Assembly: GCA_963924565.1 (NCBI GenBank) | Contig: OZ004613.1 | Location: 9,610,001 to 9,674,000, forward strand | Direction of reading: 5' to 3' | DNA: 64,000 nucleotides | Origin: Ascidiella aspersa | Lineage: Eukaryota | In this document: positions 4,860-57,560 of the stretch, piece after piece | Layout of the letters: every line of letters begins with the position of its first letter | Position numbering within the stretch: position 1 is the first letter of the stretch | Made by a program: the position numbers and the translations under genes | Notes under the pieces: generated by a model | Databases searched by the model: none | What the model saw: only the letters and a program-made list of their open reading frames with translations | What the model was told of the DNA's origin: nothing

Positions 4860-7634
4860 CGGAAATAACCAGTTGTTTTACATTTTGTGTTGTTTTTTGT
4901 TGCAAGAGTTACGACATCAAGTATATGAAGAAACTTAGTTACGTTATACAGTGAGAAAATTTTAGTAGTAGTTACTTCAGACTTTAAAAAAAACCTTGGT
5001 GAAGTTGGATTTAAAACGATAGGTCCCTGTAGGCAAATTGCACAACGACAACAAAAATAAATACTACGTACATAAATTAGTAAACCGAAACCAATTTTGT
5101 TTGGATGGCATATGATAAATATATTTCGCTACCATTATAAGAAACAACAGTCAGTATCTTATTGAATTAGAATGATTCTAATTTAATCTTTATCATTGAC
5201 GTGCAACCAGAATCGTTTGTTTTTCACCATTCAGATTCAGGCAGATTCTGTTATTCGAAAGAAAATTCCGACAACAAAAATAGAACAAAGTACATCTAGT
5301 TTTGAACTAACAGTGAATGCTTACACACCTAGTTTTGGGTTGACAACAGTGATTCCATAACGTAGCATACTGCTAAAAAGCCTGGAAAAGCTTACAACTA
5401 TACGCTTAACAACGTGTAACACTTGAAGAAAGTGATAAAAAACGTTAAAAACACCCGTGCAAATTACGAACGCAAAAACACTTAAATTATAGGTAGTTGT
5501 TAATACAACGTGAGGCGTTGGAAAAAAACACACTGGAAAATTTCATCGATACTTAAAAATCACACAGCTGGGCAGAAATCTGGTGGCAGTGAAAAATAGA
5601 GACATAAAAGAGGAATTTGCACTCTGGACAACATTGGCAATAAAAATAGAGGTAAAATATTCAGAATAAAACAAATACGTGAGCAGGCAAGACTTTCAAT
5701 TTTTTTTTTGTAAACCACGTGAATATAAGAAAATAGCACGATTAGGAATGCAAAGTAAAAAGGTAATTTCTGGTAATAAACAAAGATGTTAACTTGATAA
5801 TTCACCATGCATTCAACGAAGTAAATCGACGAGCTAAAAGAGCAACAGCAAACGCAAAAACAGCATAGGCTGGCAAAGACAATCTGTTGTTTTTCGTGGT
5901 TAATGCAGTTTTGAAGGTATTAAAATAAAAAAGTTCAGTACGTATACGACTTACAAAGATGCATACAACATAAAGAGTACGTTTGTCGGGCTTTAAGGGT
6001 GTAATTTAAAAGTAAACAAACCGGCCTATGACCGAAGTTCCATTGTTCGATTTCAACTACGCACTTCCGGTGACATAATCATGGTGAAATATAGTTTAAA
6101 TTCGGCCTCATTGTCATCTCACGAGTTCAAAATACAGGCTTTTGTTTATCTCGCTCGGCTGTTGTTATACAATTTAGTAGTTGTTGAAATAAAAACTGAA
6201 ATGTGATAGAAACACGTGGCCACAATATGCCGTAATTTCTTTAAAAACACTGCAATGGCTTACACAACACTTTACGACACAAGCGTTTATCGACTTTAAC
6301 ACACCAGTGGCACAGTCTATTTTAGTGATTCTCACCCAGTGGGTTATTATTCCCCCAAAAGGTAATTTGGCAGTTTTAAAGGGGTTATTTCGACATTAAC
6401 TTTCGATGGTATATTAGACCTCTGAAAAGCAAAAAAGTGTAATCCAATTGTTGTGTTTGAATTGTAATATTGTTCGAATGGAAATTGCACGGCCAGTGTG
6501 GTCGCGTGAATTAAAACATAGTTGGTTAGTATTTCGATAAAGTTTGATAGCGATTGTACTAGTTCAAAGTCCGTAACTCATACGGGGCTCTGCTAACGTA
6601 TTTTCTTTAAAACAGTCACGCTCACCAAAACAAACATTTGATTAGCAAGAATTGGTGGCGGGGTCACTGGTAAGTACTTCACTTCACAAAATCTAGCTAT
6701 ACCAACGTGGTGACGCCTGCAACTTTTAATTTAAACCAGTGACTTAGTTTGGCGGATGTATCAGGTCTGTGATGTTACAGTGATACCCTTTTTAAGATGA
6801 TTTTAGTGGTTACGTTTTTTTTTAAGTATTAGAGCCAATTGTGGAATCATTGATTCGACAGTTTGCAAGACTTAAAATATATTTTAAGGACGTAAAACGC
6901 TGTTCGATTTACTGTAAACGTATTCCGCAAGTCCCAACGTTTTGGTAATTACTGCATATGGACGTTTAGCAACTCCGTATTCAACTATATGTACTATATA
7001 TAAAATATCCACAAAAAAGGGAGCATTGTAGTTGCTAAAATAGCCAACGTGACGAACTGATGTTATTACGCGCGTTTAGCTCGAAATGCAGCGTTGGCAA
7101 AATACGCCGAATGACGCGCATTGGCAATCGTTTGCAGGGCAGCAAACCAAATGTGCTATAGTTCAGAGAAATTTAAACGTTTTTCACAAGACGTCAATGC
7201 AGGCCATGTCATCACGTGGAACTAACATGCGCGTGCATGTAATTGAAAACGACACGCGAAAACGATTACGTTGCGATAAGGTTCGATTTCACAAGTTTGT
7301 GTGACGTTTAACTCCAAGAAAACGCTGTTAAACGCAAAAAAACTGTACCTAAAGCGTTAACTAACCCTGCTAAAATATGGGAAATCCATCCGTACTTGAG
7401 CTTTAGTAAAGAAATGATCTAAATGGCCACGGAAATATTGAACGTAAACGCTCCACAGAAGCGGCAGAAAAAATAAACCAAAGTACGAAAAAAAAAAACA
7501 ATTTCCACTTTGATGTCACTTTTCAAAAAAGAAATAAATCAAGAAATAAATAACCTCTCGGGAAAAAATGGTCACAATCCGAAAAAAGGTTACCATTAAT
7601 TACCACAGCTTCCGACATCGCCAGGTTACAAAGG

Positions 7635-13900: not shown

Positions 13901-16111
13901 TAGGAGATTCAAACAACACCAATAAGGATTGCTCTACTTTATATAATTGCCTTTTAAAAGTGGTTGAAAAAAAGTAATGATTGTCGTAGGAATGTAATGT
14001 TTTTACTTAAAAATAGCCGTTAGTCGCTAAGTCAGGGTGTTTAAGCTATAGGATATATTTGTCTAACCTACTTCAGGGGGTATCAAATATCACGGTATAC
14101 GACATACGATAACATGGTAATAGTAAAAACAACGAGCCGTTAGCTTGTTAGTGTGCACCAAAAACTGATGTTTAAGAACCTGGTTTAAATCACTAAACAA
14201 GTGAACTATCTGAAAAACGATTAAACAACGTTACGCTTTGATTGTCTCATGTCATTACGGTATAGGCCCTATCATATAGGGTACGAGTATTTTTTTTAAG
14301 TTCAGAGGGCAAGGACATAAATATTTAGAAACAACTGCTATACGCCATTTTAGATTCTAGCGGAACTTTGTAAGATGAGTTAGGCCGCTCTCTAAATGTT
14401 AGCAGTAATGGGTCTGTTTGAAAACAACAAGAAATCGTGTCTAGGGTTTTTTTCCATCGTACAGTCGTCAACCATGAAAACCGAAAAATATTTGGGTTCT
14501 AGCCCATCTGAAGCTGCTTTTGATCAAGGTTTACGTTTGAACCTCACTGCAGGCTAGGTTATATTTCTAGCCTGCCTTGCTTGTATCATTGATCGACCGA
14601 CTCGGTGAGTCTGCGACGGCTTTCGTTGTACGTATGGCTAACGTAATAAGATTTGGAACACCAGCGCAAAAAAATCGCCCAACTGGCAGTTTATATTTAT
14701 TTCCCTTGTTTTCTACACCAAAGGCCTAGTTGTACACCGAGTAGGCGCATACTGTGTTGGACAGACGGGCTCTATTCACTAAGCAGCGTGAGTAGCCCCT
14801 TAGGAATTTGAGCAATAAATTTTGGGGTATTATAAACTAACAGAGCATCCGATTGAGAAAAGCATTCCTTTCTCGGTTGTCATTCGGCACACTGGAATCC
14901 AATTGAGACAAAACAACTGGCCTGTTGTTAATAGAGGAGATACTGCATCAATGTACTGCAAATTCGGTGAAATAGACATTTCTTTCCACAAACGTTTGAT
15001 CTTGTATATTACTCAGGTTAGGTACCTTTGAGTTTAACTGTTCTATATACGGGTCAATGTAGTATTAAAACTGGCTGAGAGAGGTTGTCAGTCGTCACGG
15101 AAGCATTAAATATCAACGTAAATTTAAGAGCTACTGCGTACAAGTTTTGTCAAAGTCAAGGAACTCCGAATATACGGTTTCTTCAATTTTTTTCTTCAAA
15201 CAAGAGAAGGAAAACCAATCATTTAGCCAAAATTTAACATCACAAGACAAGTCTAATTTTATAGTAAGCTTTCAAATCCGCACGAAGTGCGTTTCAAATC
15301 CGCACGAACACTTTTTTATCGTTTTGTCACTAGAAAACAAAAAATATCTGGCTTCCTCTGTTGGAGTTTCAAAATCATGCTTTTAGAAAATTTACGATTT
15401 GTTGCTCGTTTATAAATAAGCGCTTAACAGGACACAGCAGTCTATAAAAAAATACAGAAACAAAATGCGTTTGACAGCCTAGCGGGTAATCAAGTATTTT
15501 TTATCGTAAAGCCACACGGAACTGTAAAAGGAACGCCATCATAAAAGCGTGATTGAACCACAGAATTCGAAAGCAACGAAGCGTGAGTTTAGGAAAAGTC
15601 CCACTCTCTGTCTTTGCCGGCAATGTCCGTAACTTTTACGTATAGAGCCCTGTCCTTGGTATGTTTACACAACCGAAGAAAATGGAATTTCGTCGCCCTT
15701 GGCACACTGATAAATGTAAAGGCGTCAACCGAAACGTTTCTACCTAATGTTTCATCTTTACAATGACGTCATTACGATACTCAAACAAGCAAAATAGTTA
15801 AGATTGAAACGATCAAAGGCATTTTTTCCAGGTTATTAGGTTAAAACTTGCATTCGCGTGAATGAATTTGGTTGGCTCCAGTTTTTAACCTATATACTAT
15901 TTTTTGACGAATTCAACTTCCAAGTAAAAATCGCCGCTTTGGGTCGCAAATCATAGCTGGAATCCCTATCTTAATTCGGCATCGGATCGGCACCGATACC
16001 GCCCTAGTATCGGACGATAGCGATACTGCCAAATGGAATCGGGTATCGGCTTTGATCCGATATTATCGGACATCCCTATATACAAGCCTACAGCAAATTC
16101 ACCTGTATGTG

Positions 16112-16340
16112 AACAACAAAACTTAAAGTTTAAAAAAACGAGTGAAACCAGGATCAGACATTTTTTAAAGGAATATATTTCGCCAATGCTAGCATAATCA
16201 GTTTCTTATTCAAATAGAATCTAGATCCTGGTTTTACTCGGGTTTTTAAACTTTGGGTTTTATCGTTAAATGCGCGTCAACCTAACAGTGATCGGCAAGC
16301 AGAAACCTGCTGCCAATGCTTTTGGATTCCATAAAGATAC
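16112..16340 (-). mobile_element. Palindromic hammerhead element carrying an exact spliced-leader sequence
   Basis: Inverted arms 16112-16155 and 16224-16267. On the minus strand: ATTCTATTTGAATAAG (16220-16205), aaa, CTGATTA-t-gcta gcat tggc-GAAA-TATA. Arms and tail are homologous to 39063-39287. Confidence 0.8.
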
Positions 16341-16352
16341 GCCCTTTTATAC

Positions 16353-16474
16353 CTGTATATGAGTTCGGTGAGCATTAGAAAGCACTTGTCTACGTTGATG
16401 CTCTGTTTGGCCGAGACCTCGACGAAAAGCATCTTGTGAAGGCGGGCAAACGCACTCGCTTCTTCGGCTGAAAC
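16353..16474 (-). CDS. RAB39: Rab39 coding exon 4
   Basis: ttccag| ... |gtataa. Translates VSAEEASAFARLHKMLFVEVSAKQSINVDKCFLMLTELIY with G5 EVSAK. Confidence 0.93.
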
Positions 16475-38000: not shown

Positions 38001-39062
38001 TCAGAATGACCGTAGTAGGCTGCGCCGCCTCAAACCTACATAGCCATAATGGAAGAAGCATCAGTCACTAGGCATGTGCCGCAGCGACAATTTTCTTAGA
38101 GATGCTAGTGTCTTTAGAAGCTGGATATTGTTGTTTACCTCATACCTGTTCGACAGGACTGTTTTATGTTTTGTACAGCAGGTGTTAAAGGCTGAAGGCA
38201 TGCAACGACAGACAGTTTTAGACCTGAAAGCATGTTTTTGGCCTCGACTATTTTGTTTATCGACGAACTCCACGTATCCGTGACTGATTTCTCAGCCGCG
38301 CGGCAGCCGAAGCGATTTGCGAGGGAGCTATGGCTTCTTGAACGTGGAAAGAAAAAAAAAACAATACGCACTTTTCGCAGTGTAAATCAAATCGGCACCG
38401 CAACTGCCAAATCGCCGTTTTGCGCCGTTTGTCGACGGCGACTGCCATTTGGGACATGTGATAGGCGAGATGACGTGGGTGTTATCGATAATTGCGGGGC
38501 GTAAACTGCGCCCAAAACATCGGGAGGTACGCTTTGTTGTCACTGACAGTCGTGGATAACTTTTTGTCCTTCTGTGTGATGTTGTCGTATCACGGCGTTA
38601 TGCTGTTCGCCATAGAAGCTTAGAGTACAGTTAAATAGCTATTGTCAGCGAGATCAACTAAAGAAAAGTAAGGAGCCCTTAAAGTTCAAGATTAAGTGTT
38701 TCCGGCAGTATATGTGCTATTAAGTGTAAATATTTACATAGCACGTAAGGTATAATAAATTTGTATAGCACCTATACTTCTTAAAATGTTTAACATTTAA
38801 TTTAATGGCTCTTTACTTTCCTGTGGTTGGCACATTTCGGGATTGAACTTTAAAATAATCTTTAAACGGCAGGCCTAAAATTCGTGTAGTCTAGTGTAGT
38901 TACGATTGTATTATATTGAACAATGAGTCAACCAACAGGCAATTTAGTTATTTTTATTAAAAAGGTGATAATTGGTGGTACAGTGCAGGCTAGCAAATAA
39001 GAATTTTTAAATGCATTAGCAGTTTATTTCGCGTGTCAGGTTTTAGTTAACAAATGAAGCTC

Positions 39063-39287
39063 AAAGTCTGACAACCTGGGTAAAACCAGGATCAGACATT
39101 TTGTTAAAGAAATATATATTTCGCCTATACTGGCATCGTCAGTAGATATTCCTTTAACAAAGTGTCTGGTCCCGGTTTTAGTCAGGTTTTTTAAACTTTA
39201 CGTTTTAGACTTTTATATAGGCGTCAGCAGAACAGTGAACTACAAGCATAAACCTGCTGCCAATGGTTTTGGATTTCATGAAGATAC
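39063..39287 (-). mobile_element. Second copy of the palindromic hammerhead element (intact core, no SL)
   Basis: Minus strand CTGACGA (39142-39136)-t-gcc agtata ggc-GAAA (39122-39119)-TATATA between inverted arms of about 50 bp. Shares the tail aacagtga..caagca.aaacctgctgccaatg.ttttggatt.cat.aagatac with 16112-16340. Confidence 0.8.
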
Positions 39288-51307: not shown

Positions 51308-51554
51308 GAAGAATATTGTTACGACTTTAATTGGAGCACGTTTTGTTCGCATCCAGTGAAAATTTCAAAGTATGAAAACCCGAGAAAATTCTAAATCACA
51401 CATTTGTTTAAATGTTTGTTTTACAAACGCCTTATCCTGTGTTTTATCGGCTTTCTAGTTGGTTGTTTAAAATAATATATTTCGCAAGGATGGCATTATC
51501 AGCTGTTTCTATAAAAAAAAACTTTTATTGTGTGTTTTGAAGTTTGCAAACGTT
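51308..51554 (-). mobile_element. Dispersed repeat with degenerate hammerhead core (copy 2)
   Basis: Minus strand tttttttttatag-aaacag-CTGATAA-t-gccatccttgc-GAAA-TATA-tt; homologous to 48666-48912. Confidence 0.65.
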
Positions 51555-56423: not shown

Positions 56424-56541
56424 AGCTGTCAATTTTGCCAGGTTGAAATGCACCCGATCTCCTCCGATTTCGGAAGTTAGCAACTTCGGGATTGGTTAGT
56501 ACTTGGATGGGTGACCGCCTAGGAATACCAATTGTCGTAGA
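56424..56541 (+). pseudogene. 5S rRNA pseudogene or 5S-derived sequence
   Basis: gttgaaatgcacccgatctcctccgatttcggaagttagcaacttcgggattggttagtacttggatgggtgaccgcctaggaatacca...gtcgtag follows animal 5S rRNA, with box C intact. It has many substitutions and no T-run terminator. Confidence 0.85.
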
Positions 56542-57560
56542 AAACAAAAGATTGACGATCACAAAACAACAAATATGCCATAAAATACTTCGTACTGTTA
56601 TTACAAACCCTACATGACGCCCTTAGAACCAACAGGTCCAGTAGTTTAAGAATTAGTTTTGCTATTTCAGCCAGGTCGGTTGTCAGTGCCATTGTTCCGT
56701 GAGTTGTTTTTAAAATATATGACTTGGTTTTGCCTCCTTTTGATGAAAGCTGTCTTTCGTGGATCACAAATCTAGTGATGTCTGTTGGTTAAGGAAATGT
56801 ATATATAAACCTGCAGGGAATACACTTCCGATGATGCGCATTCATCATTTATATCTAAGATAATTTATTGTTTCATACCGTTAGATAATATAGGATGTAT
56901 TCTTGATCCAAGGTAACAGAACCTGAAAAAAAAAAACGGTTTCCCTTTGTTTCTGTCTGTTGAACAAACAACAGGGGAAATATTTTCAAAATAACAGACA
57001 GTTTTATAAAACAATGTATGTCATATATAGACGTTTTGAAAGTTGGTGGATATTTTTGTTTTAGATTGGTGTTTAACCGTCATTAGGCGGTGTTTGTGGT
57101 TAATGCTTCTACCCACATAAGCATTGTTTTTTCAGTTGGTGTTTTTACCCTTAGTTGGTTGCTTTTCAGTTTGTGTTCACCCTTGAAAGGTTGTTTGTGT
57201 TGTTACCGTGATAAAGTCTTCAGTGGCGATGTATTCTCGTGATATTTCAACCGACAAGTTTGCAGACGCCAAAGCAGGCTTCCAAATAACAGCTGGTGTT
57301 TTAACTTTCCTTTGCCGGAAAAAGCAACGACCAACATTATGGTTACGCAAAGTCAGCGAGAACCCAGTTTTTCAGCAGCTTGCATTCTGCCAGCGAGGAC
57401 GGACTCCGCGGCGGGACGTCCATTCGACAAAGAACCTTCATCCCTTTAGCAGGCAATCCATCACGAGAAAATCACGACCGACGACCGATTCGTCTATATA
57501 GCGGACTCAGCAGGGCGCTCGGCCCGCCAAATTAAACAACAGAGGACGAGGCGTTGTTTT

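Follow-up and report, generated by a model that had tools for sequence, protein, structure and literature searches.

An exact spliced leader next to a minimal hammerhead motif in a short Penelope-type retroelement insertion of Ascidiella aspersa

The window, a stretch of 64,000 nucleotides of Ascidiella aspersa DNA, carries at 16113–16350 (minus strand) a composite insertion of 238 bp, in which an inverted 5′-truncated element copy is followed by a forward copy that joins a spliced leader to a hammerhead-like core. Read along the minus strand, the sequence runs from the inverted arm through TAG, ATTCTATTTGAATAAG, AAA, CTGATTA, T, GCTAGCATTGGC, GAAA and TATA to TTCCTT. The insertion is bounded by a 12-bp direct repeat, i.e., a target-site duplication (TSD), and can be aligned over its full length with about 30 relatives, every one of them flanked by a TSD of its own. 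The upstream TSD copy (TCATATACAGGT in the minus-strand reading) lies at 16351–16362 and takes in the final 10 nt of a Ras-family exon together with the donor GT, and the downstream copy (TCACATACAGGT, minus-strand reading), which has one mismatch to the former, lies at 16101–16112. The inverted copy occupies 16224–16350 on the plus strand, with its arm at 16224–16267 and a tail of about 83 nt at 16268–16350 that is found on this side only. The remainder of the forward copy (16113–16167, minus strand), including the arm at 16113–16155, ends in a short 3′ end without a tail. The two inverted arms, 16112–16155 and 16224–16267, are 44 nt long and 84% complementary, and together with the TSD and relatives of the same architecture they bear out the inverted-arm, Penelope-type structure claimed in the earlier note.

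The forward copy begins after a filler TAG (16221–16223, minus strand), which places a G at position −1 of the leader. The leader itself, the 16-mer ATTCTATTTGAATAAG at 16205–16220 (minus strand), hereafter SL-A, matches the published Ciona leader exactly (PMC1488885) and lies 3 nt before the core, letter for letter as the earlier note had described it. No donor GT stands 3′ of it; instead, the junction AAA (16202–16204, minus strand) would represent the first element bases past the splice site and helix I positions 2.3–2.1. On the same strand, the hammerhead box CTGATTA (16195–16201) departs from the family box CTGAYGA by a G8 to T change. At 16182–16194 (minus strand) follow an extra U (16194) between positions 9 and 10.1, which is a listed trait of Penelope minimal hammerheads (PMC4209133), and helix II with its loop, GCT, AGCATT and GGC (GCTAGCATTGGC, 16193–16182). 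The GAAA box (16181–16178), a minimal palindromic helix III and the predicted cleavage-site base, an A at 16174, occupy 16174–16181, and the 3′ strand of helix I, TTCCTT (16168–16173, both minus strand), would pair with the leader AAG and the junction AAA with one A–C mismatch. The G8 to U change (CTGATTA against CTGAYGA) and the helix I mismatch indicate that the window copy is old and presumably dead, in agreement with the inactivity that had been predicted for it.

The element lies 2 nt inside the intron that follows a Ras-family exon at 16353–16474 (minus strand; Pfam Ras, E = 1e-6), in sense orientation relative to the gene. Since its TSD doubles the donor CAG-GT, a second donor is present 250 nt downstream. 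A 5S rRNA gene is located elsewhere in the window, at 56425–56542 (plus strand; Rfam, 59.4 bits).

The exact leader 16-mer occurs once in the 64-kb window, and allowing up to two mismatches gives 2 matches versus 0.07 expected from shuffles. The near match, with two mismatches at 5158–5173, belongs to a second, degenerate leader-hammerhead junction at 5120–5173 (minus strand), where the leader is followed by ATA, a core-like stretch and GAAATATAT, which makes it a member of the subfamily with junction ATA. A relative of the same family without a leader, already reported in the earlier note, is present at 39053–39287 (minus strand); here a forward copy cut short at CTGACGA adjoins an inverted copy, the core (39115–39142) is intact, and the relative shares 75% identity with the window copy. 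This relative had also been considered as a ribozyme with a long stem I, a reading that was rejected, as the long stem is the joint of the inverted copy and the 5′-truncated forward copy. A degenerate core-like stretch, CTGATAA ... GAAATATA, lies at 51476–51502 (minus strand), and about 75 nt beyond it follows a 3′ arm that resembles those of the family.

Counts across 308.6 Mb of genome, with the reversed 16-mer as the control, returned 623 occurrences of SL-A versus 1 for the control. SL-A is followed by a GT donor in 354 copies, mostly in 584-bp tandem arrays, which are leader RNA genes; these tandem genes with donors support that A. aspersa uses SL-A as its own leader, as had been supposed. 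When relatives of the window copy were aligned, a second 16-mer, SL-B (ATTCATTCGAATTAAG), was spotted in the same place. SL-B occurs 2651 times in the genome, 2272 of these followed by a GTAAG donor (GTAAGCATATGGGACC), and its genes form 429-bp tandem arrays on the window's own contig (C7, ~14.76–14.83 Mb), with dispersed copies genome-wide. From this organization SL-B appears to be a second leader gene family, of which no published description was found in the literature searched; an Rfam scan of two leader-gene loci matched no leader RNA family. A second and far commoner leader gene family in an ascidian would bear on 5′-end annotation and operon calling in this species. The leader of the window copy does not belong to such a gene, which comprises leader, GT donor, RNA body and tandem repeats: true leader genes have a GTAAG donor within 584-bp (SL-A) or 429-bp (SL-B) arrays, whereas the window leader continues into AAACTGA, and the earlier note was thus right to set it apart from the SL RNA genes.

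Exact leaders were also observed in other repeats. Two further repeat families (L001, L009, L011 and L028; L010, L021, L023, L024, L026, L027, L029 and L030) have a conserved context, on the upstream side too, in which the leader is followed by GAACTAAGTTG... or GAATCCACTTG..., and both junctions are present with SL-B as well. At L003–L008 (C1, 3.28–3.34 Mb), each unit of a ~10.7-kb tandem repeat contains an A-rich run, an exact leader and AGAAAAAGATGCC..., as though a segmental array had taken in the retrocopy of a trans-spliced mRNA.

A genome-wide pattern count (leader, CTGANNA within 16 nt, a helix II stretch and GNAA) identified 231 dispersed leader-hammerhead loci, 72 with SL-A and 159 with SL-B, versus 0 for both controls; as copies within a subfamily are kin, these counts overstate the number of independent events. 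By their junctions the loci fall into seven subfamilies, namely AGA, ATATA, AAA, ATA, GAA (two subfamilies with different cores) and one with a junction of 12–13 nt. Both SL-A and SL-B occur in seven of the seven, at a nucleotide that is constant within each subfamily. The exact leader+AAACTGA junction of the window copy, which the earlier note had proposed to search for, is shared by 11 loci genome-wide. The sequence 5′ of the dispersed leaders varies by locus, and leader-gene flank was never seen there. A G at position −1 of the leader is present in 32 of 71 leader-hammerhead copies, compared with a background of 17.8% (p = 1e-7), and this excess would fit a base added opposite the cap, as other reverse transcriptases are known to do. 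At L083:500–640 and L118:500–640, two leader-hammerhead copies face each other head to head, meeting at leader base 1 or close to it, and L118 contains a doubled leader and junction as well; both look like the outcome of a fold-back or template switch at the RNA 5′ end. A tRNA gene (L095:695–767, plus strand; Rfam, 71.5 bits) lies about 200 nt from another leader-hammerhead copy.

The position of the leader in these elements becomes intelligible from relatives that have none. The 16 bases upstream of the junction were listed for copies with an intact core, 300 from a subfamily termed b and 193 from the window's family. Among the first 100 copies listed in these two groups, counted by hand, about half show a pyrimidine tract whose final AG directly abuts the junction, and in about a third this place is taken by SL-A, SL-B or the decayed remains of a leader. 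Two copies of the former type that were compared have a further ~170–200 nt upstream of the AG in common. The pyrimidine tract and AG most probably represent an unspliced acceptor. Three upstream versions, i.e., outron plus acceptor, SL-A and SL-B, thus join the element at one and the same nucleotide, which argues that the leader came from repeated SL trans-splicing of the element RNA and that both RNA forms were copied back into DNA. A tree of 15 window-family copies, from which one segmental duplicate was left out, is star-like with no strongly supported branch, and leader type is unclustered on it (5 changes versus a shuffled mean of 4.4). The leader ends at its exon end, the acceptor of the relatives lies at that place and alternative leaders occupy the same site, as would be found in retrocopies of trans-spliced RNA. 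Together with the G at −1 and the Penelope architecture, this supports the proposal of the earlier note that a trans-spliced hammerhead RNA was reverse-transcribed to its 5′ end and reinserted, and the window copy would have arisen in this way like hundreds of its relatives. Re-splicing at the terminal AG of a genomic leader had been considered as the main route and was demoted once the abundant unspliced acceptor form was found.

The structural evidence for a hammerhead comes from the family rather than from the window copy. Both boxes, CUGANGA and GAAA, are present in 38 of 58 distinct SL-A copies, whereas the window copy departs from the first (CTGATTA). In a register-true alignment of 27 distinct copies with explicit pair counts, paired cells amount to 94.4%, versus 87.0% for 500 shuffles, of which 0 attain the observed figure, and 47–65% in slid registers; compensatory changes affect two pairs of helix I and one of helix II. 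The pair G10.1–C11.1 is GC in 24 of the 27 copies, and the third helix II pair changes from CG to UA in 5 copies. The U after A9 is invariant, A15.1–U16.1 is found in all 27, and most have UAUA as the helix III loop. Position H17 holds A or U; the parser admitted no G there, so that the lack of G carries no information. Helix I pairs 2.1–2.6 are kept in 34–43 of 43 copies, pair 2.7 in only 18 of 43, and AU, GC and UA types are all present at pairs 2.2 and 2.3. Helix I and helix II both appear when three young copies are folded to minimum energy. Just one of these three folds beats its shuffles (z = −2.6), and the window copy shows no such advantage (z = +0.63). RNAalifold, applied to all subfamilies in a plain MAFFT alignment whose 3′ strands stood out of register, predicted nothing for that reason and was set aside.

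The Rfam hammerhead models, to which the earlier note had looked for support, provided none, the window region and ten family loci remaining without a match up to E = 10; across the whole window and one unspliced copy Rfam likewise returned no hammerhead, and gave weak hairpin (microRNA-precursor-like) matches. A relaxed descriptor had to be devised in 2014 for motifs of this kind (PMC4209133). Two subfamilies that have multiplied (GCGTAA; e.g., L025, L089, L105 and L031–L041) carry GUAA in place of GAAA, an A13 to U change that should disable the hammerhead core. Their multiplication suggests that spread needs no intact core and no cleavage, so that either the core is dispensable for spread or GUAA is a tolerated variant. 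Penelope minimal hammerheads were reported to cleave poorly in vitro, and only as dimers (PMC4209133). Judged by pairing and core conservation, these short elements appear to carry a minimal type-I hammerhead motif, for which self-cleavage is predicted.

The earlier note further suggested that the leader completes stem I and thereby couples trans-splicing to self-cleavage. The pairing part of this suggestion held up: the leader AAG is paired with CUU in 40 of 61 short-junction copies, compared with 0.63 paired bases on average for random leaders, helix I enters the leader by exactly three bases, and the pairing ends at the next (fourth) leader base. In the subfamily with a 5-base junction, the CUU lies two places further on, showing that the register follows the leader, which on these alignments would form part of helix I. 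As to the coupling part, the acceptor AG of the unspliced form pairs alike and loses one A–U pair only; as it supplies all but one of the pairs made by the leader, coupling between trans-splicing and cleavage is not supported, nor is a switch from an inactive to an active ribozyme upon trans-splicing. The subfamily with a junction of 12–13 nt has a 7-bp helix I without any leader base.

The insertion architecture was examined in the window's family, for which BLAST gave more than 1100 candidates. Thirty aligned copies each have their own TSD of 8–14 bp and share one layout: an inverted copy, whose truncation point varies, meets the forward copy at a joint that varies as well, and only one of these two copies carries an extra tail (about 95 nt). 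Subfamily b has the same architecture with a tail of about 75 nt, and it includes simple insertions, e.g., L098, in which the TSD directly abuts the leader and no inverted copy is present. The hallmarks described for Penelope-like elements are an inverted 5′-truncated copy, tandem or inverted structures and a one-sided tail (PMC8557442), the tail having been traced to internal initiation of reverse transcription (PMC11167929); an inverted 5′-truncated copy, a one-sided tail and a TSD of variable length are what the Ascidiella copies show. Downstream of the leader-hammerhead copies, no ORF of note was found, indicating that the elements are non-autonomous. The genome contains 25 GIY-YIG matches, and at L127:2100–3832 (minus strand) lies a 5′-truncated canonical Penelope-like ORF, a single frame with RVT_1 and GIY-YIG of which 453 aa are open. 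About 180 nt past its stop is a minimal hammerhead of its own (CTGATGA ... GAAA, palindromic AGCT). As to a link to Penelope RT/GIY-YIG ORFs, for which the earlier note had suggested looking, such ORFs are present in the genome, but L127, the sole Penelope-like locus examined for a shared 3′ end, differs from the short elements in both hammerhead and 3′ region.

RNA data came from one 2026 run under the same species label, a standard paired cDNA library of a type in which short RNAs and 5′ ends go missing; the reads examined, about 6% of the run, were compared with the young copy L098. The element family is present in RNA on both strands at a depth that tracks DNA copy number, and 96% of the reads continue into other flanks. 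The best-supported loose end at the junction is the unspliced pyrimidine tract (15 reads), and those junction reads that were listed show the unspliced form, so that transcription of the unspliced form is seen directly. In the ~6% read of this one standard library, there were no read-start piles at the leader or at the predicted cleavage site, and no clear leader-started RNA in a library type that loses 5′ ends. A run filed under another organism label contained 40% of the sampled L098 words and may derive from a close relative with the same young element family.

Taken together, we are highly confident that the window feature is a dead, old, short, non-coding Penelope-type retroelement insertion with a minimal type-I hammerhead motif, made from a leader-capped RNA. 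A full-length member would consist of ~170–200 nt of its own sequence followed by a pyrimidine tract and an AG placed directly on the 5′ strand of helix I. In transcripts that offer this acceptor no upstream donor, the spliceosome would join SL-A or SL-B to it and remove the 5′ part of the element, a step suggested by the DNA copies. Unspliced and leader-capped RNAs would then both be copied and inserted in trans, to judge from the insertion architecture by a Penelope-like RT/GIY-YIG enzyme, leaving the inverted 5′-truncated copy beside the forward copy, the one-sided tail and a TSD of 8–14 bp. The window copy would descend from a leader-capped RNA and would later have lost G8 and one helix I pair.

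Other origins of the leader have to be weighed against this one. One capture of the leader as DNA, or a small number of captures, followed by inheritance without repeated trans-splicing would suit the close kinship of the copies within a subfamily, and RNA read through a leader-bearing copy would indeed hand the leader on. Such inheritance is already disfavoured and highly unlikely, as every one of the seven subfamilies has both leaders at one nucleotide, the unspliced relatives show a canonical acceptor just before that nucleotide and leader type does not cluster on the tree. In trypanosomes and nematodes, some retrotransposons are known to insert into leader genes, and the head-to-head and doubled leaders at L083 and L118 could be taken as traces of insertion into leader RNA genes or of a reverse transcriptase that jumped from element RNA onto leader RNA. 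The joint, however, always falls exactly at the end of the leader exon, it is constant within a subfamily, unspliced copies have an acceptor at that very place, and neither leader intron nor leader-gene flank is seen at the dispersed copies; we therefore consider this origin even less likely than DNA-level capture.

The remaining alternatives concern the nature of the insertion itself. A MITE-type DNA transposon whose terminal inverted repeats enclose a leader-like word by chance would account for the 44-nt inverted arms and for the weak microRNA-precursor-like hairpins in Rfam, but it would not account for a TSD that varies in length, an inner joint that differs in every copy, a tail on one arm or simple insertions without an inverted arm, and it is hardly credible. 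That an AT-rich 16-mer merely happens to stand beside CTGA and GAAA words could be argued from the window copy alone, whose core is mutated and whose fold is matched by shuffles, and the earlier note had roughly put a chance exact 16-mer in the window at a few in 10^4. The counts against controls (623 versus 1 for the leader, 72 versus 0 and 159 versus 0 for the fusions) refute coincidence, to which we assign a negligible probability. The preferred reading remains that of an insertion made from a leader-capped element RNA.

Going beyond this reading, SL trans-splicing may be a regular, selected step of the life cycle, with the acceptor kept in helix I so that the leader gives a cap and a defined 5′ end, removes the 5′ part of the element and completes helix I, and so that ribozyme folding and splice-site use regulate each other. 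Leader-bearing copies could, in addition, be re-spliced at the terminal AG of their leader on read-through, which would leave them promoter-free yet mobile. We put this forward tentatively and regard it as rather doubtful. Penelope-like elements and their hammerheads are little understood, and the sole known link between them and splicing is a Drosophila cis intron that ends at helix I. The same acceptor placement now appears in a chordate, for SL trans-splicing, with hundreds of DNA copies that would record both unspliced and spliced RNA. Three questions become testable, namely the competition of ribozyme folding with splice-site use, the preference for capped leader RNAs as templates and the sharing of two leaders among targets.

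In comparison with known systems, Penelope minimal hammerheads, their insertion structures and the D. virilis cis intron ending at helix I have been published, whereas no paper joining spliced leaders to hammerheads, retrozymes or Penelope-like elements was found in the literature searched, subscription journals being outside its scope; to that extent, the absence of a prior description presumed in the earlier note stands. As in the Penelope minimal hammerheads of Cervera and de la Pena (2014, PMC4209133), the Ascidiella motif has CUGANGA and GAAA boxes, an extra base between 9 and 10.1, a G10.1–C11.1 pair, a 1-bp helix III with a palindromic UAUA loop and many variable families per genome. 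As in Penelope insertions (PMC8557442, PMC11167929), an inverted 5′-truncated copy lies beside a forward copy, the tail is on one end and elements with RT and GIY-YIG are present in the genome. Unlike the published Penelope-like elements, those of Ascidiella are ~235–430 nt long, have no ORF and carry a tail of ~75–95 nt rather than 30–40, and about a third of their copies start with a host spliced leader, which is unmentioned in those papers. The 3′ end of the Penelope intron in Drosophila virilis maps to the 5′ end of hammerhead helix I (PMC4209133), so that in both systems the acceptor is on the 5′ strand of helix I and spliced and unspliced RNAs would have different versions of that helix. 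In D. virilis, however, splicing to the acceptor takes place in cis and the intron persists in the genomic copies, whereas Ascidiella would use SL trans-splicing, with both forms fixed in DNA.

The elements also resemble animal non-LTR retrozymes (PMC7229834; bioRxiv 10.64898/2026.07.22.740005) in being short and non-autonomous, in their type-I hammerheads and in their tie to Penelope-like elements; neither of these two papers mentions a leader. Retrozymes are tandem repeats that give circular RNAs, whereas the Ascidiella copies are dispersed singles or inverted pairs; a search of a single subfamily, b, at a single core-to-core spacing of ~213–243 nt gave 0 head-to-tail dimers. A further parallel is found in retrocopies of leader-bearing mRNAs, such as dinoflagellate genes with relict leaders. 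In both cases, a genomic leader without a donor marks the copy of a trans-spliced RNA. The template in Ascidiella, however, would be the RNA of a retroelement that carries a ribozyme and has a Penelope-type 3′ end rather than a polyadenylated host mRNA, and its splice site lies inside the predicted ribozyme.
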